A stretch of 36,340 nt of DNA, taken from assembly GCA_013416795.1 (NCBI GenBank), contig RQSC01001371.1, positions 4,406 through 40,745 on the forward strand, in the 5' to 3' direction. Positions 3,272 through 31,175 of this stretch are shown here, piece after piece. The DNA comes from Prasinococcaceae sp. CCMP 1430 (Eukaryota; Plantae; Prasinodermophyta). A model generated the notes under the pieces. That model was given only the letters and a program-made list of their open reading frames with translations, did no database searches and was not told the origin of the DNA. The position numbers and the translations under genes are program-made. Position 1 is the stretch's first letter. Each line of letters opens with the position of its first letter.

Positions 3272-3883
3272 CTGCAGCAGCGCGCGAGAGAGAGTGCGCA
3301 TGTCAGCGGGCGCGTCAACGGGTGGCATGGAGCGCATGCGCGCGCGCCCCCCCCGGATCCAACAGCCTCGCTGGAGCGACCTGGCACACCCTCCCCTGCG
3401 TGATCCTCGCCCCTTCCCCCCGCCCCCCCCGCCCGGCCCTCCGCCTCCTCCCCTGCCGTGGCCCGACCGCGGCGCGCGCAAAAATCCCGGCGCCGCCGGC
3501 GCCGCGCGGCCGCACCATCGCCGCCCGCCCCCTGCGCGAGAACCTCCCACGAGNCAGCGACAAGCAGACTGACCAATCTACGCCCACTCGCCGCACCCAC
3601 GCAGCCGATGGAACTCGCTTGCTCAGCACATCACCCAGGTGCTGCCCGACGCGGCCAAGTCTGTCGTCGTACAGGTGAGCCAGGCGAGAGTGGCCGCCGT
3701 CGCCGAAAGCTTCGACGGACCGGCGGCATTCGCATCGATCGTCAAAGCGAGCGCAGCCAGCGCGGACGCCTCGGCGGTGGACCTGGGCGCTGCTCTCCGC
3801 GCCGCCCTCGACAACACACCGCCCGCGCCCGTCTGCTCCGACTCTCATCCTCGGGCCGCCCGCTGACCTCGGCGGCCGCTGCG

Positions 3884-7959: not shown

Positions 7960-8314
7960 CGCACTTTGCCCCCCCCGCCTCCCCCAGCCAGCCCGGCCGC
8001 CGTCGCCTGCGCGACCCAGCCAGCCAGGCGGGTCGGGTCGGGGCGAGGTGAGGTGCGCGCCGCCGGGGCGGGGGCCGTCGGGCGCGCGCGCCGTGGCACG
8101 GACGCGACGACAACACCCGCCTCCCTCAGCGTTCCCCTCCCCCCCCACTCACCCCATTTCCACCCCCCTGCGCACGCATGGCGCGGAACACTCCCAACGC
8201 CGCCCCGAACGCGCCGAGGCGACTCTTCGGTTCGAAACCAATTCGCGTCGTCCGTTCCGCGTTTCTTCCGGCGCGGCGGCGCGCGGCGACCGCGCGCGCG
8301 GGGCCGGATCAGGT

Positions 8315-9778
8315 TTTTTTTTTTTTTTCGCCGCGGGGGCCACCAAAAACGGGTCCCCGTTTGAACGCGCGCCGTTTCGTCGCACGTTTCGTCCGCTGGC
8401 GCGCCGGCCCGGAAAAACGCTCCCCCCGACCGAACCGGTCCTCGATTGATTGAATCCTGCATGGTCCGGCCTGCGCCGGCGGGGGCCGGATCGTTTTTTT
8501 TTTTTTCCGTGCCGCGCGGGCCGAAACGCGTCCTTGATTTTGAATGCGCGCACGGCACGCGCGGGAGGGGTCCGTTTTCCTTCGGCGCCCGCGGGCGCCA
8601 GTCGGGTACGACGGAACTGAAATGGAACCGGTTCGTGAAATCCCGCATGAGCGAAGAAGGCCACGCCGGCGCGCGACGGAAAAATCGTGCGCGCGCGCAA
8701 TCCAGCCGCCCGAGGGGGCGGCGCGCGGATCTCAACCGCCGCTCGCGATAGTTGCGACTCGCGGGCGCGGGTAACCGCCGCGCGCGCGGCGCCAGCAAGA
8801 TGCGTTTTGACCTCGGGCGGTTCCCCGGGCGACGGCGGCGAGGGGCGCGCGGCGACAATATCCCACTACGACCTCGTAGTGTCGGGAGGCAGAGGGGCGC
8901 GCGCGAGCCTGGTCAGCGGGGCGCGCCATACAGGCGCAGCCGCGCGCGGCCCGGTCGGCGCGCCTCGCGGGCGGCGCCGGTCGAGCAGCCATGGGTGAGC
9001 CCTACCTCAAGAGGCAGCTCACCAACGTCGCGAACGTGCCCATCGCCGACTTCCCGCCGTCGGTGCGCGGGCTCCTCTCCAAGTTCGACAAGGTGCGGAC
9101 CGCGGCGCGCGGCATGCTGTGCATTAGGGTTACCGCGCCGCGCCGCGCCCGCGCCCGCGCCCGCGCTGACGCGCGCTGACGCCTCGCCCCGTCGGGCTCT
9201 CCGTCGTGGCGGCGCCTCGGCAGGATGGTGACGGCACCGTCGACGCCGCCGAGCTGCAGGAGGCGGCGAAGATGTTCGAGGCCGCCCAGGCCGCCCCTGA
9301 CGGCTCGATCCCGATCCAGCAGCTCCCGACCGAGCTGCGGCCCGCGATGAAGACGTTCGACTTGGACGGCGACGGCACGATCGACCCGATGGAGCTCGCG
9401 CGCGGCGCGGAGCTCTACGCCCAGTCCAAGGATACGGTGAAGAAGCTCACGCGGCTTGCGCTGGCGCTGCTGCTGCTCATGGGCATCATGCTCGCCGCCA
9501 TCACCGGCCTTACGTTCACCGTCGTCGAGCTCTCCAAGGAGACTACGACCTCGAGCGACGGCGTCCAGACGGTCAAGGGGTCGGCTGAGAGTGTCAAGAC
9601 CGCGTCGGCCGACACGCTGTCCGTGGGAGGTGTGACGGTTGACCGCACCACCGGCAAGCCGGCGTCCGTGGCGCCCGTCCTGACGCCCACGCCGCTCACG
9701 TCGCTGCTGCCGACCGCGTCGTTCCACGAGATGCGCTACTTCAAGGTGTCCAGCCCGCTGGGCGCCGAGCTCCAGCTG
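8315..9778. repeat. 1.46 kb near-identical duplication, copy 1 (upstream region plus 5' part of the EF-hand gene)
   Basis: Aligns to 14255-15718 at a constant offset of 5940. The only differences I found are 8 substitutions within 9286-9367. Confidence 0.95.
8991..9778 (+). pseudogene. Truncated EF-hand/TM family copy C; exons 8991-9092, 9224-9778
   Basis: Same start (MGEPYLKRQL), intron and EF-hands as copy B. It breaks off after ...GAELQL and runs directly into the 5' leader of copy A. Confidence 0.75.
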
Positions 9779-9821
9779 AGCCCGGTCGGCGCGCCTCGCG
9801 GGCGGCGCCGGTCGAGCAGCC

Positions 9822-12800
9822 ATGGGTGGCCGCGACCCCTCGCCCCCCCCGGCGAGCCGGCCCACCTCCCTCAAGAGGCAGCTCACCAACGTCACGCACG
9901 TGCCCATCGACGAGTTCCCCCCGTCGGTGCGCGAGCTCTTCTCCAAGTTCGACAAGGTGGGGACCGCGGCGCGCGGCGTGCTGTGCTTTAGGTGCCGCGC
10001 CCGCGCCCGCGCCTGCGCTGACGCGCGCTGGCGCCTCGCCCCGTCGGGCTCTCCGGCGTGGCGGCGCCTCGGCAGGATGGCGACGGCACCGTCGACGCCG
10101 CCGAGCTGCAGGAGGCGGCGAAGATGTTCGAGGCCGCCCAGGCCGCCCCTGACGGCTCGATCCCGATCCAGCAGCTCCCGACCGAGCTGCGGCCCGCGAT
10201 GAAGACGTTCGACTTGGACGGCGACGGCACGATCGACCCGATGGAGCTCGCGCGCGGCGCGGAGCTCTACGCCCAGTCCAAGGCCAAGGTGAAGAGGCTC
10301 ACGCAGCTCGCGCTGGCGCTGCTGGTGGTCATGGGCGTCATGCTCGGCGCCTTCGCCGGCCTTACGTTCGCCGTCGTCGAGCTCTCCAAGGAGACTACGA
10401 CCTCGAGCGACGGCATCCAGACGGTCAAGGGGTCGGACGAGACTGTCAAGGTCGCGTCGGCCGAGACTATGACCTCGAGCGACGGCGTCCAGACGGTCAG
10501 GGGGTCGAACGAGACTGTCAAGGTCGCGTCGGCCGACACGATGTCCGTGGGAGGCGTGACGGTGTGGCGCGCCAGCGGCAAGCCGGCGACCATCTCGCCG
10601 GTCCTGACGCCCACGGCGCTCACGTCGCTGCTGCCGACCGCGGGCAAGGTGCTCTACGCGATGAAGTTCCACAGGTCGGGCGACCCGCGGCTCGAGGTGC
10701 TGTTCGTGCACGGCACGGCGCGCATGCCGCGCGAGGGGTCCATCCACGGAACCGTCATCGAGATCGTCACGCAAGTTGGCCACATCATCCTCGACGACGA
10801 GCTGCTGTACATCGAGCATGAGGATGCCAGCCACATGTTCATGCGCGCCGGCTTCCCCGTCTCGAACTCGACCAGCACCAGCGGCGGGCGCGCGCTGCTG
10901 GGCATCTTCGAGCTCATGGGCTTCTTCAATGCCATCGATGGCCTCACGCCGGAGGGCGCCAGCGAGGACATGGTGCTCCCGAAGCTCAACAAAGACTTGC
11001 TGTACGCCGAGATCAAGGTGTACGTGCCCTGCGATGCCGCCGAGTACCCCACGCTCATGGCAGAGACGTCCGACTACGCCGGCGCCGACCTGTGCGAGAG
11101 CGGTGGCGAGGATTTCCCGGGCATGGAGCTGTACGACGCCAACCTCGACGGCGTGATGACGCGCCACATCGCCTACACCGAGAAGTCCTGGACCAAGGAC
11201 GGCCGCACGCTCGCCATCAAGTACTACGAAAACGCGCCCTCGCTCGAAGTCAAGGAGCTTCGCGATACCGACGCCAATCTGGCGTACACGTGGGTGGAGC
11301 GCTTCGGCCAGATCTACGCGTGCTCGCAGCTCCTAGAGCCGAACGGGGTCCTCGGGCTCAGCTACCTTAGGCAGCTGGGGCTCGTGGCCGCCAGCGTCAC
11401 CGCGCTCAGCAACACCAGCGACCTAGTCGGGGACCCGCAGGTCTACGCCGACCTGGGCATGGACGTGAGCGACCTCGAGCTCCCCGATTATTCGGACGAG
11501 AACACCACCGTGACCCAGGAAGAGGTGAAAGACGAGGTCGTGGACGAGACGGTCGCCACCGTTCCGTGGTCCAAGTGCAAGCTCCCGCGGCGCAGGCAGG
11601 CACCGCACAGCCGCGCGGGCTTCAAGGTGAACACCACCCTCAAGGGCAAGTGGGAGGCGTGGGACATGTACGAGTACACCGACGAGGACGGCTTCTCGCG
11701 CCCGGTGCGCTTTGCCTACGTGGACAAGGCCGCTAACGGCGTGCAATACAACGAGATCCTCGAGTGGACCTACGGCGGCTTCGATGCCGACGCACTGCTC
11801 GTGGTGCCCTCGGTCTTCGACGGGCTCGTGGACGGCGACACGCCCGACAAGTTCCAGTGCCCCAACAACACCTCCCCCAAGCTGCCGGCGCTCGACGGGC
11901 CGTTCGGCGCGATGTGGGACGTCATGGACAACGTGACGCTCGTGCTGCAGCAGACGGCCGAGGAGAACGCCCAGGACTACGCGGACGGCCTCCAGTCGGG
12001 CAACACCACGATCGGCAACGCCTTCGAGGACGCGCTGACGGAGGGGCGCCGCGAGCTCATGGAGCGCGTCGACGCGGGCATTTACTCGCTGGACGAGATC
12101 GAGGAGATGGACTTCGAGCACAGGCTCGCGGGCCATCTCGAGAGCATCTCCCGCCGGAAGCTCGCGCGCGAGAGGCTCCTGCGGCTGGGCTTGGTGGGCC
12201 TGCAACAGTCGCTCAGGCGGTACTTCGCCGAGCGCGAGTCCGAGCGCAAGCTCCAGGCCGCCGCGGGCGGCCGCGAGCTCGAGCAGACCATCTATGACAA
12301 CAACATCCCGTTCGACGTCTACATGTGGCCGCCCTGCGGCCCCGAGTTTACGCCCTGGATAGACCCCTCCGTCTGTGTCGATTCGTACGAGGCCGCAAGC
12401 AAGAGGGCGCTGCAGATTCAGTTCACGATGAAGTTCTTCCTGCAGATCCCATGGTGGTGGAGCGGCGGCATCGACATCAAACGGCCCGACACCTGGCCCA
12501 TCGTCTTCGACGGCTTCGCCGTCGGCGGCGAGGTGCCCCTCGACCCTTGGAGAAGTGGTATTGTGACGGCGTACGGTGAGGCCGGCTGGGAGAACGCCCG
12601 CGACCTCTTCGATGACAAATGGTGGACGAACGGCTGGGGCACCATCTACGGTGAGATGGGCGTCAAGGCGGGCATCAAGGACCTCATCCCGAACGCGGTC
12701 CAGGTCATCCTGCCGTCGAGCTTCATCGACCTGTTCGAGCAGAACCTCGTTTCGCTGAGGGTCCAGTTCGACTCGACGACGCCGTACATCGACCTCATCG

Positions 12801-13228
12801 GCAAGATGTGCCTCTTCATTGCTGGCTTCTTTTCGTGCTTGCCCCTGATCGGCTTCCAGGTCTTCCTGGAGCTCAAGATGGACGTCGTTGGCATGGTCCG
12901 CACGGGCGCGCTCAAGGCGACGCTGAGCGACTTCGGCCTCGAGTACTACCACCCCGGCTTGTGCCAGGGCTGGTTTCCAGTATGGTGGTGGGCCGTCAGG
13001 TGGTGCCACAGCTGCTGGAGGGTCTGTTGCTGCTGGGGTCGCTGCTGGGGCGGCTGCTTCCCGTACCCTTGCGGTGGCTATTGGTACATCGCCTTCTGGG
13101 CCCCGTACTGGTACCCCTGCAAGAAGAGCGGCACGCTCTCCGCGAAGTCGTTCCTCGGCCTGCCGAACTGGTGGCTCACGCTGCTCAACGCGGGCAGCCT
13201 CTTCAGCGGCAAGAAGATGCTCGCCTAG
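9822..13228 (+). CDS. EF-hand, single-TM, large-ectodomain protein, copy A; exons 9822-9956, 10076-13228
   Basis: EF loops DK|DGDGTVDAAE (split by the intron) and DLDGDGTIDPME, a hydrophobic TM 'LALALLVVMGVMLGAFAGLTFAVV', a long open frame with strong GC3 bias, and a Cys/Trp-rich C-terminus. Confidence 0.85.
10400..10543 (+). repeat. 72-nt (24 aa) in-frame tandem duplication unique to copy A
   Basis: TSSDGIQTVKGSDETVKVASAETM followed by TSSDGVQTVRGSNETVKVASADTM. Copies B and C have one unit. Confidence 0.9.
10644..10698. other. Complemented (non-reversed) tract 1, 55 nt
   Basis: gcaaggtgct...gaggt is the position-by-position complement of 15660-15714 (cgttccacga...ctcca) and of 9720-9774. 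Confidence 0.95.
11328..11383. other. Complemented (non-reversed) tract 2, 56 nt
   Basis: agctcctaga...gggctc is the position-by-position complement of 16344-16399 (tcgaggatct...cccgag). Confidence 0.95.
11564..11618. other. Complemented (non-reversed) tract 3, 55 nt
   Basis: ccgtggtcca...cgcgcgg is the position-by-position complement of 16580-16634 (ggcaccaggt...gcgcgcc). Confidence 0.95.
12157..12211. other. Complemented (non-reversed) tract 4, 55 nt
   Basis: gaagctcgcg...agtcg is the position-by-position complement of 17173-17227 (cttcgagcgc...tcagc). Confidence 0.95.
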
Positions 13229-13662: not shown

Positions 13663-14252
13663 TCAAAATGCACCTGCGCGGGAGGGGTGCTGGAGCGTTC
13701 GTTCCGAGACCGGAGCGGGCGAATCGACGGAAACGATTTCAAAATGCACGAACCGCGGTTGTGACGCCCTCGACCGGCAAAGGGGCCCGATCCGACGCCG
13801 TCGCTCCCCGGGCGGGTTCGAATTCGGCGCGCGCGAGGTGCCGCTGCTGCTGCCGCTGCTGCCGCGCGGCGCGCGGCGCCGGGGGCGGGGGCAGGAGCGC
13901 GGGAAGGCAAGGGGGGTGAGGTCGTCGAACAGGCCATCCGCATCTTCGGCGGACTGGGCGGACGTCGAGGACTCGCTGCCCTCGAACGCGCCCGGCACGT
14001 CCGTCTGGCCGTGGTCGTCACGACCCCAGCAGTAGATCGCGCCGTCCTCCCGGGCGACGCCGCACGTGTGAGCCGCTCCGGCGCTCACGGACGCCCACGC
14101 GCCCGCGCCGCTCGGCACGTCCGCCTGGCCGTCGGCGTCGCGCCCCCAGCAGCGCATCGCGCCGTCGTCCCGGGCGACGCCGCACGTGTGCCAGTCCCCT
14201 GCGCTCACCGAGGACCACGCGCCCACGCCGCTCGGCGCGTCCGCCTGGCCGT
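13663..14252 (-). CDS. RCC1/BLIP-II-like repeat protein, 3' fragment cut by the NN junction
   Basis: Two tandem repeats of 'VSAGxxHTCGVARxDGAxxCWGRDxxGQxDVP', then a low-complexity tail ending at TGA 13663. Confidence 0.8.
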
Positions 14253-14254
14253 NN

Positions 14255-15718
14255 TTTTTTTTTTTTTTCGCCGCGGGGGCCACCAAAAACGGGTCCCCGT
14301 TTGAACGCGCGCCGTTTCGTCGCACGTTTCGTCCGCTGGCGCGCCGGCCCGGAAAAACGCTCCCCCCGACCGAACCGGTCCTCGATTGATTGAATCCTGC
14401 ATGGTCCGGCCTGCGCCGGCGGGGGCCGGATCGTTTTTTTTTTTTTCCGTGCCGCGCGGGCCGAAACGCGTCCTTGATTTTGAATGCGCGCACGGCACGC
14501 GCGGGAGGGGTCCGTTTTCCTTCGGCGCCCGCGGGCGCCAGTCGGGTACGACGGAACTGAAATGGAACCGGTTCGTGAAATCCCGCATGAGCGAAGAAGG
14601 CCACGCCGGCGCGCGACGGAAAAATCGTGCGCGCGCGCAATCCAGCCGCCCGAGGGGGCGGCGCGCGGATCTCAACCGCCGCTCGCGATAGTTGCGACTC
14701 GCGGGCGCGGGTAACCGCCGCGCGCGCGGCGCCAGCAAGATGCGTTTTGACCTCGGGCGGTTCCCCGGGCGACGGCGGCGAGGGGCGCGCGGCGACAATA
14801 TCCCACTACGACCTCGTAGTGTCGGGAGGCAGAGGGGCGCGCGCGAGCCTGGTCAGCGGGGCGCGCCATACAGGCGCAGCCGCGCGCGGCCCGGTCGGCG
14901 CGCCTCGCGGGCGGCGCCGGTCGAGCAGCCATGGGTGAGCCCTACCTCAAGAGGCAGCTCACCAACGTCGCGAACGTGCCCATCGCCGACTTCCCGCCGT
15001 CGGTGCGCGGGCTCCTCTCCAAGTTCGACAAGGTGCGGACCGCGGCGCGCGGCATGCTGTGCATTAGGGTTACCGCGCCGCGCCGCGCCCGCGCCCGCGC
15101 CCGCGCTGACGCGCGCTGACGCCTCGCCCCGTCGGGCTCTCCGTCGTGGCGGCGCCTCGGCAGGATGGTGACGGCACCGTCGACGCCGCCGAGCTGCAGG
15201 AGGCGGCGAAGATGTTCGAGGCCGCGCAGTGCGCCCCGGACGGCTCGATCCCGATCCAGCAGCTCCCGACCGAGCTGCGGCCCGCGTTGAAGACTTTCGA
15301 CATGGATGGCGACGGCACGATCGACCCGATGGAGCTCGCGCGCGGCGCGGAGCTCTACGCCCAGTCCAAGGATACGGTGAAGAAGCTCACGCGGCTTGCG
15401 CTGGCGCTGCTGCTGCTCATGGGCATCATGCTCGCCGCCATCACCGGCCTTACGTTCACCGTCGTCGAGCTCTCCAAGGAGACTACGACCTCGAGCGACG
15501 GCGTCCAGACGGTCAAGGGGTCGGCTGAGAGTGTCAAGACCGCGTCGGCCGACACGCTGTCCGTGGGAGGTGTGACGGTTGACCGCACCACCGGCAAGCC
15601 GGCGTCCGTGGCGCCCGTCCTGACGCCCACGCCGCTCACGTCGCTGCTGCCGACCGCGTCGTTCCACGAGATGCGCTACTTCAAGGTGTCCAGCCCGCTG
15701 GGCGCCGAGCTCCAGCTG
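14255..15718. repeat. 1.46 kb near-identical duplication, copy 2
   Basis: Matches 8315-9778. It begins at a poly-T immediately after NN. Confidence 0.95.
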
Positions 15719-18247
15719 TTCGTGCACGGCACGGCGCGCATGCCGCGCGAGGGGTCCATCCACGGAACTGTCATCGAGATCGTCACGCAAGTTGGCCACA
15801 TCATCCTCGACGACGAGCTGCTGTACATCGAGCACGAAGATGCCAGCCACATGTTCATGCGCGCCGGCTTCCCCGTCTCCAACTCGACCAGCACCAGCGG
15901 CGGGCGCGCGCTGCTGGGCATCTTCGAGCTCATGGGCTTCTTCAATGCCATCGATGGCCTCACGCCGGAGGGCGCCAGCGAGGACATGGTGCTCCCGAAG
16001 CTCAACAAAGACTTGCTGTACGCCGAGATCAAGGTGTACGTGCCCTGCGATGCCGCCGAGTACCCCACGCTCATGGCAGAGACGTCCGACTACGCCGGCG
16101 CCGACCTGTGCGAGAGCGGTGGCGAGGATTTCCCGGGCATGGAGCTGTACGACGCCAACCTCGACGGCGTGATGACGCGCCACATCGCCTACACCGAGAA
16201 GTCCTGGACCAAGGACGGCCGCACGCTCGCCATCAAGTACTACGAAAACGCGCCCTCGCTCGAAGTCAAGGAGCTTCGCGACATCGACGCCAATATTCAG
16301 TACAAGTGGGTGGAGCGCTTCGGCCAGATCTACGCGTGCTCGCTCGAGGATCTCGGCTTGCCCCAGGAGCCCGAGTCGATGGAATCCGTCGACCCCGAGT
16401 TGGCCTCGAGCTACGATTCGCTCAGCAACACCGACGAGTTAAACGCGGACACGCAGGTCTACGCCGACCTGGGCCTCGATGTGAGCGACGTCGAGTTCCC
16501 CGATTATTCGGACGAGAACACCACCGTCACCCAGGACGAGCTGACAGAGGAGGAGGTCGACCAGACGGTCGCCACCGTCGGCACCAGGTTCACGTTCGAG
16601 GGCGCCGCGTCCGTCCGTGGCGTGTCGGCGCGCCGCTTCAAGGTGAACACCACCCTCAAGGGCAAGTGGGAGGCGTGGGACATGTACGAGTACACCGACG
16701 AGGACGGCTTCTCGCGCCCGGTGCGCTTTGCCTACGTGGACAAGGCCGCTAACGGCGTGCAATACAACGAGATCCTCGAGTGGACCTACGGCGGCTTCGA
16801 TGCCGACGCACTGCTCGTGGTGCCCTCGGTCTTCGACGGGCTCGTGGACGGCGACACGCCCGACAAGTTCCAGTGCCCCAACAACACCTCCCCCAAGCTG
16901 CCGGCGCTCGACGGGCCGTTCGGCGCGATGTGGGACGTCATGGACAACGTGACGCTCGTGCTGCAGCAGACGGCCGAGGAGAACGCCCAGGACTACGCGG
17001 ACGGCCTCCAGTCGGGCAACACCACGATCGGCAACGCCTTCGAGGACGCGCTGACGGAGGGGCGCCGCGAGCTCATGGAGCGCGTCGACGCGGGCATTTA
17101 CTCGCTGGACGAGATCGAGGAGATGGACTTCGAGCACAGGCTCGCGGGCCATCTCGAGAGCATCTCCCGCCGCTTCGAGCGCGCGCTCTCCGAGGACGCC
17201 GACCCGAACCACCCGGACGTTGTCAGCATCAGGCGGTACCTCGCCGAGCGCGCGTCCGAGCGCAAGCTCGAGGCCGCCGCGGGCGGCCGCGAGCTCGAGC
17301 AGACCATCTATGACAACAACGTCCCGTTCCAAGTCTACATGTGGCCGCCCTGCGGGACCGAGTTTACGCCCTTGATAGACCCCGCCGAGTGTGTTGAACG
17401 GTACGAGGCCGCAAGCAAGAGGGCGCTGCAGATTCAGTTCACGCTGAAGTTCTTCCTGCAGTTGCCGTGGTGGTGGGGGGGGCGCGGCATCGAACTCACC
17501 CGGCCCGACACCTGGCCCATCGTCTTCGACGGCTTCGCCATCGGCGGCGAGGTGCCCCTCGACCCTTGGAGACTTGGTCTGGTGACGGCGTACGGTGAGG
17601 CCGGCTGGGAGAATGCCCGCGACCTCTTCGATGACAAATGGTGGACGAACGGCTGGGGCACCATCTACGGTGAGATGGGCGTCAAGGCGGGCATCAAGGA
17701 CCTCATCCCGAACGCGGTCCAGGTCATCCTGCCGTCGAGCTTCATCGACCTGTTCGAGCAGAACCTCGTTTCGCTGAGGGTCCAGTTCGACTCGACGACG
17801 CCGTACATCGACCTCATCGGCAAGATGTGCCTCTTCATTGCTGGCTTCTATTCGTGCTTGCCCCTGATCGGCTTCCAGGTCTTCCTTGAGCTCAAGATGG
17901 ACGTCGTTGGCATGGTCCGCACCGGCAATCTCAGGGCGTTGCTGAGCGACTTCGGCATCGAGTACTACCACCCCGGCATGTGCCAGGGCTGGTTCCCAGT
18001 GTGGTGGTTCCGCGTCAGGTGGTGCCGCGCCTGCTGGAGGATCTGCTGCTGCTGGGGTCGCTGCTGGGGCGCCTGCATCCCGTACCCTTGCGGTGGCTAT
18101 TGGTACATCGCCTTCTGGGCCCCGTACTGGTACCCCTGCAAGAAGAGCGGCACGCTCTCCGCGAAGTCGTTCCTCGGCCTGCCGAACTGGTGGCTCACGC
18201 TGCTCAACGCGGGCAGCCTCTTCAGCGGCAAGAAGATGCTCGCCTAG
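14931..18247 (+). CDS. EF-hand, single-TM, large-ectodomain protein, copy B; exons 14931-15032, 15164-18247
   Basis: EF loops DK|DGDGTVDAAE and DMDGDGTIDPME, TM 'LALALLLLMGIMLAAITGLTFTVV', several N-x-S/T sequons after the TM, and a Cys/Trp-rich C-terminus. Paralog of copy A. Confidence 0.88.
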
Positions 18248-19948: not shown

Positions 19949-21034
19949 GTGCGTGCGGCGCGCGAGCGGCGCGGCGCGCGCGAGAGGGGGGCCGGGGGGC
20001 GAGGGAGGGGGCGCTTCGCCGCGCGCCTCGCGCACGCGTGGGCGTGCGAAGCTGAGCGAGTCCGTCGCACGCCAGGGTCTCCAGCGCGCATGCGCCTCTG
20101 CCTGGTATCGCGGATTCCACGGCCGCGTGCGAGCGCAGCGCCGCCGCGGCGCCGCCGGCCGGGGTCCCATGCATGAGCGGCGGGAGCGAGCAGAGAGCCT
20201 CGACGACGCCACATCGAGGGGGAGAGCTCCCGTGGGTGATGCAATCATAGAATGAAGCGTACTGTCACCGCTTGCACGACTCCCCGGCACCTCGCCGGGG
20301 TCGGGGTCGAGGCTCGGCCGGCGAGCAGCGGCCGCGGCAGCGAGCTCCGCCGCCTGACTGACTCCCTGACTGACTGACGTCTGCCTGCACAGCCCATGAC
20401 CTCCATGCCATGCGTCTCATGCGGCGGACGTCCGCGGGCGATCGGTTGGTCGGTTGGTCGTCGGTCGGTGCCGCCCACGCCGCGCGCCGCCACACGCACG
20501 CAGGCACAGACAGCGTAGCCTCTCCAACCACCCAACAAAACTTCCAACCCTCCCCCCGCATTCCCGGCCGGGCATCGGGGAAAGAAAGGCGGCGGGTGGA
20601 GCGTTTCGCCCGGCCGGCGGCTGCCCACCGACCGACCGATCTTCCAACGAAGAAGACACGAGCGCACGCACTTACGCAGGCACGCACGCGCCGACCCACA
20701 GACAGAGACAGGCAGACAGACCTGACTCGGTCGGATGTATCTCCTGGCTGGCTGGCTGGGCACCCTCCCCAACCCACCCACACAAAGATGCCCCCCAAAA
20801 GACCCACAAACAAAAGCGGACGGTGTACTTGGTACACCGCGTGGAAACGGAGGCCCGTCCGATTTCCCCTCCTCCCTCGCGCGCGATCGATCGAAAAGCG
20901 ACCCAAACGAAAAGGCCAATCAAAAAGGCGCCCCGCCGACCCAAAAAATCCGCCTTGCCGCCCGCGCGCGCGCCGCGAAAAAGGGTCCATGGAAGGCCCG
21001 GAGGCGACGTCAATTCGAATGTGGGCGTGAGGGG

Positions 21035-24000
21035 ATGGGGTTGGGGTACGCGGCGACGCGGCGGCGGCGGCGGAGGCGGCGGCGGGTGCGCGTTTTTGCG
21101 CGCGCGCATTCGCGCGCGCACGAATGCGCGCCGCCGACGGGGGTACGGGCGGCAGCGGCGGCCGTCGAGGGCAGCGAGACGGCGGCGAAGGGGCGATCGG
21201 CGCCGCTGGAGCACATGTACCGCTCGCCTCTGCTCAGCCCCGCCCAGGAGGCCGAGCTCGCCGCGCGCGCCGCCGAGCGCGTCAGCGCGCGCATCGTCGG
21301 CGTGCGCACCGAGGCGTGCTTCAACATCGACGCCGGCGGCGCGCCGCTCGGCGCTGCAGAGGCTGACAAGCTGCGCTGGCTGCTTCGCGAGACGTTCGAG
21401 CCGGAGATGCTCACGGCGGACGCGTCGCTCGCCGCCGGCGGCGACGTCGCCGCCGTCGTCGAGGTGGGGCCCCGCATGAGCTTCACGACTGCGTGGAGCA
21501 CCAACGCGGTCTCGGTGTGCAAGAACGTCGGCCTGGGCGGCATCCGCCGCGTGGAGCGCAGCCGGCGCTACGCGCTCGTGACGGAGGACGGCGCGTCGCT
21601 GAGCGACGACGAGGTCGAGGCCTTCGCCGCCATGGTGCACGATCGGATGACCGAGCAGGTCTACCCGGAGACGCTGGCCAGCTTCTACGTGGACGCCACG
21701 CCGGCGCCCGTCGAGACCGTGCCGCTGCTCGCGGAGGGCAAGCAGGCGCTGCGTGACGCCGACGAGAAGTACGGCTTCGCGTTCGATGACTTCGACGTGG
21801 ACTTTTACGCCGAGCTCTTCGGCGAGAAGCTCGGCCGCGACCCCACCACCGTCGAGCTCTTCGACCTCGCGCAGTCCAACAGCGAGCACTCGCGCCACTG
21901 GTTCTTCAAGGGCGCCATCACGGTGGACGGCGAGCCCATCCCGATGCACCTGCTGGACATGGTGCGCGAGACGCTCGACGCCAGCCCGGACAACTCGGTG
22001 GTGGCCTTCAAGGACAACTCGTCGGCCATCCGCGGAGGCAAGGCGATCGCGCTGCGTCCCACGACGCCCGGCGAGCCGGGCGAGCTCACGCCGCAAGAGG
22101 TCGATCTCGACCTGCTGCTCACCGCCGAGACCCACAACTTCCCGTCCGGCGTCGCGCCGTTCCCCGGCGCCGAGACCGGCGCGGGCGGGCGCATTCGCGA
22201 CACCCACGCCACCGGCTCGGGCTCCATCATGGGTGGCGCCGCCGCGGGCTACTCCGTGGGCAACCTGCAGATTCCCGAGGCTCCCGAGGAGCACGAGGAC
22301 GCCTCCTTCGAGTACCCCGACAACCTGGCGACGCCCCTGCAGATCCTGCTCGACGCGTCGGACGGCGCGTCGGACTACGGCAACAAGTTCGGCGAGCCGC
22401 TCATCGGCGGCTTCACTCGCAGCTACGGCCAGCGCCTGCCCAACGGCGAGCGCCGCGAGTACATCAAGCCCATCATGTTCAGCTCGGGATTCGGGCAGAT
22501 CGACCACAGGCACCTCGAGAAGGGCGAGGGCGAGGTGGGCATGCTGGTGGTCAAGATCGGCGGGCCCGCCTACCGCATCGGCCTCGGCGGCGGTGCGGCG
22601 TCCTCCAAGGCGGAGGGCGAGGGGACGGGCAACGTCGACCTCGACTTCAACGCCGTGCAGCGCGGCGACGCCGAGATGTCGCAGAAGCTCTGGCGCGTGG
22701 TGCGCGCGTGCGTGGAGCTCGGCGACGACAACCCCATCGTCCAGATCCACGATCAGGGCGCTGGGGGCAACTGCAACGTCGTCAAGGAGCTCATCTACCC
22801 CGGCGGTGCGACCATCGACATCCGCGCGGTGAACGTTGGCGACGAGACGCTGAGCGTGCTCGAGATCTGGGGCGCCGAGTACCAGGAGAACGACGCGATG
22901 CTCATCAAGCCCGAGAGCGAGCACATCATCCGCAAGTTCTGCGAGCGCGAGCGCCTTCCCATGGCCGTGCTTGGCGCCATCGACGGCTCGGGCCGCGTGA
23001 CGCTGCTGGACACGCAGGCACCGGAGGGCTCCCCGCCGCCCGAGGACCTCGACCTCGAGGATGTGCTCGGCGACATGCCGCAGAAGAAGTACGACTTCGT
23101 GCGCGCCGAGGCACCCGCGGCACCGCTCGTGCTGCCCGGCGCCACCTCGGTCTCCGAGGCGCTCGAGAAGGTGCTGCGCCTGCCGGCGGTTTGCTCGAAG
23201 CGCTTCCTCACCTCGAAGGTGGACCGCTGCGTGACCGGGCTGGTCGCGCAGCAGCAGTGCGTGGGCCCGCTGCAGCTGCCGCTGGCGGACTACGCCGCCA
23301 TGGCGCGCTCCCACTACACCACGGAGGGCGGCGTGACCGCCATCGGCGAGAGGCCCATCTCCGGACTCCTGTCGCCCGCCGCCATGGGCCGCATGTCGCT
23401 CGGCGAGGCGCTCACGAACCTGTCGCTGGCGCGGATCACCGACCTGAGCGAGGTCAAGTCGAGCGGCAACTGGATGTACGCGGCCAAGCTCGCCGGCGAG
23501 GGCGCCAACCTGGTGGACGCGTGCGAGGCACTGAAGGACGCCATGATCGAGCTCAAGGTGGCCATCGACGGCGGCAAGGATTCGCTCTCGATGGCCGCCA
23601 AGGCGGGCGGGGAGACCGTCATGGCGCCCGGCACGCTCGTCATGTCCATGTACGTGCCGAGCCCGGACGTGACCAAGGGCGTCACGCCCGATCTCAAGCT
23701 CGGCGACGGCGGCGTGCTGCTGCACGTCGACCTGGCGCGCGGCCGCCGGCGCGTCGGCGCGTCGGCCCTCTCGCAGGTCTACAACCAGCTCGGCGCCGAG
23801 TGCCCCGACCTCGACGAGGTGAGCATCATCCGGCGCCTGTACGACACCATGCAGCCCCTCCTCGAGGAGGGCCTGATCGCCTCGGGGCACGACATTTCCG
23901 ACGGCGGCATCGCGACCACGCTGCTCGAGATGGCCTTCGGCGGCGACTGCGGCATCGAATGCGACCTGCCGCCGCCGGCCAGCGAGGCCGACGCGGCTGC

Positions 24001-26012: not shown

Positions 26013-26586
26013 NNNNNNNNNNNNNNNNNNNNNNNNNNNNNNNNNNNNNNNNNNNNNNNNNNNNNNNNNNNNNNNNNNNNNNNNNNNNNNNNNNNNNNNN
26101 NNNNNNNNNNNNNNNNNNNNNNNNNNNNNNNNNNNNNNNNNNNNNNNNNNNNNNNNNNNNNNNNNNNNNNNNNNNNNNNNNNNNNNNNNNNNNNNNNNNN
26201 NNNNNNNNNNNNNNNNNNNNNNNNNNNNNNNNNNNNNNNNNNNNNNNNNNNNNNNNNNNNNNNNNNNNNNNNNNNNNNNNNNNNNNNNNNNNNNNNNNNN
26301 NNNNNNNNNNNNNNNNNNNNNNNNNNNNNNNNNNNNNNNNNNNNNNNNNNNNNNNNNNNNNNNNNNNNNNNNNNNNNNNNNNNNNNNNNNNNNNNNNNNN
26401 NNNNNNNNNNNNNNNNNNNNNNNNNNNNNNNNNNNNNNNNNNNNNNNNNNNNNNNNNNNNNNNNNNNNNNNNNNNNNNNNNNNNNNNNNNNNNNNNNNNN
26501 NNNNNNNNNNNNNNNNNNNNNNNNNNNNNNNNNNNNNNNNNNNNNNNNNNNNNNNNNNNNNNNNNNNNNNNNNNNNNNNNNNNNNN
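26013..26586. other. Assembly gap (574 N)
   Basis: Run of N. Confidence 1.
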
Positions 26587-26994
26587 GCGCTCCCGCGCTC
26601 CCGCGGAACCGCGCGCCCGCGAAACGCCCCGCCGCGGGTTTTCGCTCCGGCCCGGAACGCCATCGGGGCGAACGCGCGCGCGCCGCCCGAAAACGCGGGG
26701 GGTGCGCGCGCGAGGAGGGGACGGAAAAAGATCTTTTTTTTTTTTTCCCTCTCCCCAATCGCTCGGCGCGGCGCGCCCCGCGCGAGGGCGGGGAAGAGCC
26801 GCCGACCAACCAAACAAACGAAGGGAACAGGAAGATTCGGAGGAGTGAGCTGTGCTGTGGGAGGACGCGTCCAAAGGGTGGCATGGAACCGGGCGGTTTT
26901 CTTTGGAAGGGTTGAAACAGGGTTCACGGGAGACGCGGCGCCGCGCGGGCGCGGCGCGGCGCGGCACCTCACCCCGCCCTTCCACCACCACCAA

Positions 26995-27088
26995 CACACG
27001 CACGCGCACGCACAAACACGCACACGCACACGCACACGCACACGCACACGCACAGCGCAGAGCAGCGCAGCGCAGCGCAGCGCGCGCG
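26995..27088. repeat. Compound microsatellite (CACACG)n + (GCGCA)n
   Basis: Direct reading of cacacgcacacg... followed by gcgcagcgcag... Confidence 0.85.
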
Positions 27089-30927: not shown

Positions 30928-31175
30928 GCACTGGCGTGCGCGAGGAGGCAGGCGCTGCCTTGTTGTTGGTGTTGTTGGTGTTGTGAATATATATACATAT
31001 CCTAGCTAGCTAGTAGACTCTCTAGGACTAGTAGAGTCACTCTAATACCGAGTCATCCAGTCGACACCGCAGGCCGCCCCCGCGCGCGCTCGCCCGCTCC
31101 TTACCTCCCCCCCACACCCCCACACCCCCACACCCCCCACAACCTCGCACACCGCCCCCACCACCGAATTCGAGC

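Follow-up and report, generated by a model that had tools for sequence, protein, structure and literature searches.

The window analysed here, a stretch of 36,340 nucleotides with about 70% G+C, encodes eukaryotic proteins, including a cytochrome b561, a DUF1751 protein, a full-length PurL, a TauE protein and a TPR+CS protein. The best named relatives of the PurL share about 60% identity with it and come from green algae and land plants. The feature of concern in this work is a tandemly duplicated gene. Its copy A has a main ORF at 10058..13228 (1056 codons) and its copy B a main ORF at 15146..18247 (1033 codons), both on the plus strand. A partial third copy, C, lies at 8316..9778 on the same strand; it comprises the upstream region and the 5' part of the gene (5' 830 nt), and is near-identical to 14256-15718 of copy B. 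The ORF coordinates used for the three copies are those of the main ORFs and not of full gene models. The encoded protein has an N-terminal EF-hand, a hydrophobic segment, a large domain without a Pfam match and a Cys/Trp-rich C-terminus, and is, by these predicted features, an EF-hand, membrane-anchored protein. The named relatives of this protein come from Prasinoderma coloniale and the remainder from marine metagenomes; the Prasinoderma coloniale proteins match only weakly, and the published genome of that species was assembled from PacBio data with NextDenovo. Taken together, these features point to a marine green alga of high GC content, probably a relative of Prasinoderma.

Several smaller features of the duplicated gene are worth describing. 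A conserved GCAGCCATGG start context is present at 9822, 8991 and 14931, compared with the ORF starts at 10058, 9206 and 15146 in copies A, C and B. It is therefore found some 215-235 nt upstream of each main ORF and in a different reading frame, which makes a short first exon followed by an intron likely; the true start of copy A is probably in this upstream exon. Just after the membrane segment the copies differ in the number of a 24-residue (72-nt) repeat, ETTTSSDG.QTVKGS.E.VK.ASA, which is in tandem in copy A (10391-10534) and single in copy C (9539-9610) and copy B (15479-15550). Copy C runs directly into the upstream region of copy A, with the junction at 9779/9780, and has a cluster at 9286-9367 where it differs from copy B and matches copy A at the protein level. 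Copy C may reflect a genuine tandem duplication of part of the gene, or else a contig that was placed twice. Between copies A and B there is also a 120-nt tandem repeat (13989-14228) of two copies that are 83% identical.

The window is a scaffold, as can be seen from its runs of 1, 2, 574 and 1 undetermined bases. The single-N gaps are at 3554 and 28790 and the 574-N gap is at 26013..26586. The two-N gap, at 14253..14254, is located exactly at the left edge of the homology between copies B and C, just before a poly-T run.

When copies A and B are compared base by base at an offset of +5016, four tracts of copy A are the complement of copy B written in the same direction, without reversal. Tract 1 (10644..10698, plus strand, as are the other three) matches the complement of 15660-15714 at 55/55 positions, and equally the complement of 9720-9774, the B-type twin of this tract in copy C, which ends 4 nt after it. 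Tract 2 (11328..11383) is a 56/56 complement of 16344-16399, tract 3 (11564..11618) a 55/55 complement of 16580-16634, and tract 4 (12157..12211) a 55/55 complement of 17173-17227. Summed over the four tracts, the complement identity is 221/221 and the direct identity 0/221, and the tract ends are abrupt. Each tract adjoins an A/B mismatch on one side, at 10643, 11384, 11563 and 12212, respectively. The second tract can be read in either of two ways, as the 55-mer 11329-11383 with a real A/T SNP beside it at 11328, or as a 56-mer. The four pairs of coordinates and the non-reversed complement had been claimed in an earlier, sequence-only reading of this DNA and are exact to the base; its further statements, that an ordinary SNP abuts each tract on one side and that length and frame are kept with no stop created, hold as well. 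The reading frame of ORF 10058-13228 is open through all four tracts. Since the chance of meeting no in-frame stop in four random 55-nt windows is 0.042, the open frame is a mild coincidence and no evidence for selection.

Matches of this kind do not arise by chance. Outside the homologous block the background complement agreement is 0.29 per site, from which a 55-nt run would be expected with a probability of about 1e-29.6. The longest chance same-direction complement run in the window is 17 nt, and a scan of the window at all offsets found no other run above 17 nt except that with copy C at 9720-9774. Templated synthesis is antiparallel, and both inversion and template switching produce reverse complements. 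The processes of fork stalling and template switching or of hairpin-templated repair do resemble the present case in that a short block is replaced within collinear homologous sequence; however, they need the reverse complement of a nearby template. The best reverse-complement match of a tract in the window covers 29-32 of 55-56 positions, which is the chance level, and no reverse-complement or plain-reverse twin of the tracts is present in the window (best 33/55). This excludes inversion and template switching. Chance, ordinary divergence, inversion and plain reversal were all rejected on these numerical grounds.

Which of the two copies carries the native sequence can be judged from homologues. 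A homologue of 65% identity (P0002) keeps 15, 4, 11 and 13 of the 19 B-type residues at tracts 1 to 4, and conservation is still partly visible in distant family members, in which the motif of tract 1 and that of tract 3, S-x-R-K/R-F, can be recognized. The A-type tract peptides, GKVLYAMKFHRSGDPRLEV, QLLEPNGVLGLSYLRQLGL, PWSKCKLPRRRQAPHSRAG and RKLARERLLRLGLVGLQQS for tracts 1 to 4, have no match among the homologues compared. On this comparison copy B holds the native sequence at all four tracts. The sequence-only reading had likewise taken copy B for the original, and it is borne out by the B-type peptides kept in these relatives and by the uncomplemented tracts of the metagenome contigs described below. 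Its argument from the atypical codons of the A tracts is weak. Among 17-codon windows of gene A, the codon log-likelihoods of tracts 1 to 4 as written fall at the 55th, 5th, 13th and 47th percentile. Complementing the tracts back gains 1.6-5.8 log units of codon likelihood. As a detector of hidden complemented tracts, codon usage was discarded for its low power, given that the known tracts range from the 5th to the 55th percentile; in PurL it gave a single signal, at 21020-21060, which is a low-complexity run of Gly codons.

The single-copy PurL gene in the same window serves as a control. In a comparison with six homologues it agrees at 681 of 784 conserved columns, no window was flagged, and no junk stretch of about 18 residues was found. 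As PurL is without a junk segment, the defect goes with the repeat joins.

The nature of these joins becomes apparent in a de Bruijn graph at k = 55, built from the window with the tracts complemented back. Along copy A this graph has 19 branching 55-mers, of which four fall on the tracts with base-exact agreement: the in-branching nodes at 10644-10698 and 11564-11618 (tracts 1 and 3), and the out-branching nodes at 11329-11383 and 12157-12211 (tracts 2 and 4). The two longest segments shared by A and B, S1 (10644-11383, 740 nt) and S2 (11564-12211, 648 nt), have these four nodes as their outer ends. Shared runs of lesser length (56-235 nt) are unaffected, as are the small bubbles that SNPs form within S1. 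If one counts instead the exact A/B runs of at least 55 nt in the ungapped block, again with the tracts complemented back, there are five of them with ten run-end 55-mers, and the tracts make up four of the ten. The probability that a tract abuts a SNP, given an identical window, is 0.0096 per tract and about 8e-9 for all four. The tract length is constant and equal to one k-mer (55, 56 as 55 plus 1, 55 and 55 nt). The end of copy C, past the twin of tract 1, is at a neighbouring branching node.

Two marine metagenome contigs, from separate assemblies, contain very close relatives of the duplicated gene. The first, L001 (ENA ERZ28654620), is a Tara METAG scaffold of 9.9 kb, and the second, L002 (ENA ERZ27287754), is a contig of 3.4 kb named k119_.... 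Both are native in every tract they cover, which are tracts 1 to 4 for L001 and tracts 3 and 4 for L002. At tract 1, L001 is B-type at 55/55 positions, and at tract 2 at 56/56, followed by A-state SNPs. At tract 3, L001 and L002 are B-type at 52/55 and 54/55 positions, with A-state SNPs preceding the tract in both, and at tract 4 each is B-type at 55/55. A complement-only BLAST of the two contigs against the window gave matches at the four tracts and nowhere else. The sequence around the native tracts is largely that of copy A: between tracts 2 and 3 the A state is found at 28/31 discriminating sites in L001 and 27/31 in L002, and after tract 4 at 19/22 and 16/22 sites, respectively. The last A-specific SNP in these contigs touches the native tract. 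A junction of this kind cannot be made by an assembler mixing the paralogues, and real reads in which an A flank is joined to a native tract must therefore exist in those samples. The sequence-only reading had named A flanks joined to a B-type tract as the configuration that would speak against a biological origin. This configuration is found in the relatives L001 and L002, though not in the source strain; over the full BLAST alignments the contigs are about 93-96% identical to the window, which makes them close relatives and not provably the same strain. In a further search, a W/S-degenerate pattern of tract 4, which covers the native and the complemented form and was validated on the window, had no match in the JGI metagenome contigs, the GTDB genome contigs or IMG/VR.

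The contigs are also of interest for their own composition. Each is a mosaic in which some blocks have the A state and others the B state. L001, for instance, resembles B as far as tract 1 and again at 11266-11289, and resembles A in the rest. Such mosaics suggest that gene conversion between the paralogues is ongoing, or that the population has several alleles. In the place where the window has copy C and then copy A, L001 has a single gene with a C-like 5' part and an A-like 3' part.

Judged from these sequence comparisons, the four tracts are in all likelihood a software artefact of k-mer-graph short-read assembly, at k = 55 (or 56 with overlaps of k-1), and not a property of the DNA. The contig ends in de Bruijn short-read assemblies overlap by k or k-1, and 55 is the largest default k of SPAdes and metaSPAdes for reads up to 150 nt. 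The tandem copies A and B share S1 and S2, which separate the copy-specific segments, and in a de Bruijn graph the A and B paths come together at the first 55-mer of each shared segment and part again at the last. In writing the A path, the program would have emitted the 55-base overlap complemented, without reversal, at the four joins between unique and repeated sequence. The affected repeats are only those too long for reads to bridge, and copy B is clean; from this we infer a late, repeat-placing step, probably one in which a repeat that had been placed in copy B was used or filled a second time, such as repeat resolution, scaffolding or gap filling. An error of exactly this form would be produced if a 2-bit-encoded k-mer were bit-inverted and the step of reversal left out. 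It should be pointed out that S1 is not simply the same contig pasted twice, because A and B differ at 11 sites inside it (12 if 11328 is a real SNP and does not belong to tract 2). These internal differences may have come from local re-assembly during gap filling, or from a later read-based correction or polishing.

The sequence-only reading had already suspected an assembler or gap-filler that wrote a k = 55 overlap complemented and not reversed, and this suspicion gains weight from the branching 55-mers, the native contigs, the conserved B peptides and the gapped scaffold. Several points count against an assembly artefact: only four of the 19 branching nodes are affected, S1 has the internal differences just described, the two native contigs belong to close relatives, a published account of an assembler behaving in this way did not come up in the literature search, and no in-frame stop arose (chance 0.042). 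Compared with known errors at repeat boundaries in de Bruijn assemblies, the present defect is similar in being one k-mer long and in its position, on branching nodes where two-copy segments end, within an N-gapped scaffold. It differs in kind, since the known errors are collapses, chimeras, duplicated k-mer overlaps and reverse-complement misorientations, and here the overlap is complemented only. The program cannot be named from the sequence; the overlap size fits SPAdes at k = 55 as well as SOAPdenovo or Velvet at k = 55 and does not discriminate between them.

Another way in which software or people could have produced the tracts is after the assembly, by something other than the graph code of an assembler: a custom merging or polishing script, manual editing, an error in submission processing, or a deliberate alteration. 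We consider this improbable, although there is something to be said for it. We found no report in the literature of an assembler writing a complement without reversal, and to call 'complement' in place of 'reverse complement' is a frequent slip in home-made scripts. Against it stands the position of the tracts, which fall to the base on branching 55-mers and on the ends of S1 and S2, at the chance of about 8e-9 given above. Whatever wrote the tracts must have known the k = 55 graph or its overlap structure, which random or hand-placed edits would miss; and a script that merged contigs by their 55-nt overlaps would amount to the assembly artefact preferred here.

Less probable by a wide margin, and in our view barely credible, is that the tracts are real in the DNA of the alga. 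Replication or repair would then have copied about 55 nt with a systematic A<->T and C<->G exchange, known as 'swinger' exchange, or by parallel-strand synthesis, and copy A would be a real instance of the A<->T plus C<->G swinger exchange in a nuclear gene, located next to paralogue mismatches. We know of no accepted enzymology that gives a non-reversed complement. In what we found of the literature, swinger exchange is the sole published claim of a real one. It was proposed by Seligmann et al. as a systematic exchange with sharp switches, is disputed, and has been described, for instance, for the 16S rDNA of Kamimuria wangi, a case cited in PMC7027195. The sequence-only reading had held that no known route leads to such tracts and that the process would be undescribed if real; as a claim, though, such an exchange is not wholly undescribed, since the disputed swinger literature proposes it (PMC7027195).

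The resemblance of the tracts to swinger sequences is a close one. There is a contiguous exchange of Watson-Crick partners in the same direction, here complete at 221/221, the change from regular to exchanged sequence is sharp, as in that literature, and none of the four tracts interrupts the frame (p = 0.042). The differences are, however, more telling. A polymerase is claimed to have produced the swinger sequences, and here the tracts have the length of a k-mer and their positions are set by differences from a paralogue 5 kb away, which matter to a k-mer graph and not to a polymerase. A true swinger sequence should be present in the physical nucleic acid and be reproduced by independent sequencing, and in the present case the independent contigs carry the tracts unexchanged, with the native sequence joined to A-type flanks in close natural relatives. 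The peptides that result from the tracts replace conserved residues, and the tracts lie in a scaffold with gaps. Ordinary rapid divergence or gene conversion that merely resembles a complement would fit the mosaic of identical and divergent blocks in A and B, but can be dismissed outright with no direct identity at any of the 221 positions, complement identity at every one, and a chance of about 1e-29.6 per tract.

If the tracts are an assembly artefact, copy A is in biological terms an ordinary tandem paralogue gene with four corrupted stretches. The consequences for the databases would be less ordinary. A complement-only error alters neither the length nor the GC content of a sequence, and in this case the frame stayed open too, so the error would pass standard checks and leave the predicted protein with four false peptides, each some 19 residues long, in a reading frame that is otherwise intact. 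The sequence-only reading had foreseen false peptides of about 18 residues in a database protein. Its detection is possible only where an uncorrupted paralogue or relative exists. If one program is responsible, every repeat join in assemblies made by that version may carry the error. Some sequences in databases that were interpreted as swinger exchange could be explained in the same mundane way, and the case of copy A argues that at least some of the swinger-like patterns in databases are software artefacts.

Some minor observations outside the duplicated gene can be added. The window contains an (ACACGC)n microsatellite at 27016-27054 and a CCCCCACA repeat at 31108-31138. A G+C-rich intergenic motif, ending in GGCCGGATC or GAAAAAGATC and followed by 13-15 T, occurs four times, at 8286-8329, 8463-8506, 14403-14446 and 26704-26747. 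The motif could act as a signal resembling a terminator or a promoter, or represent a small repeat element. An assembler is also likely to break at long homopolymers such as these runs of 13-15 T.
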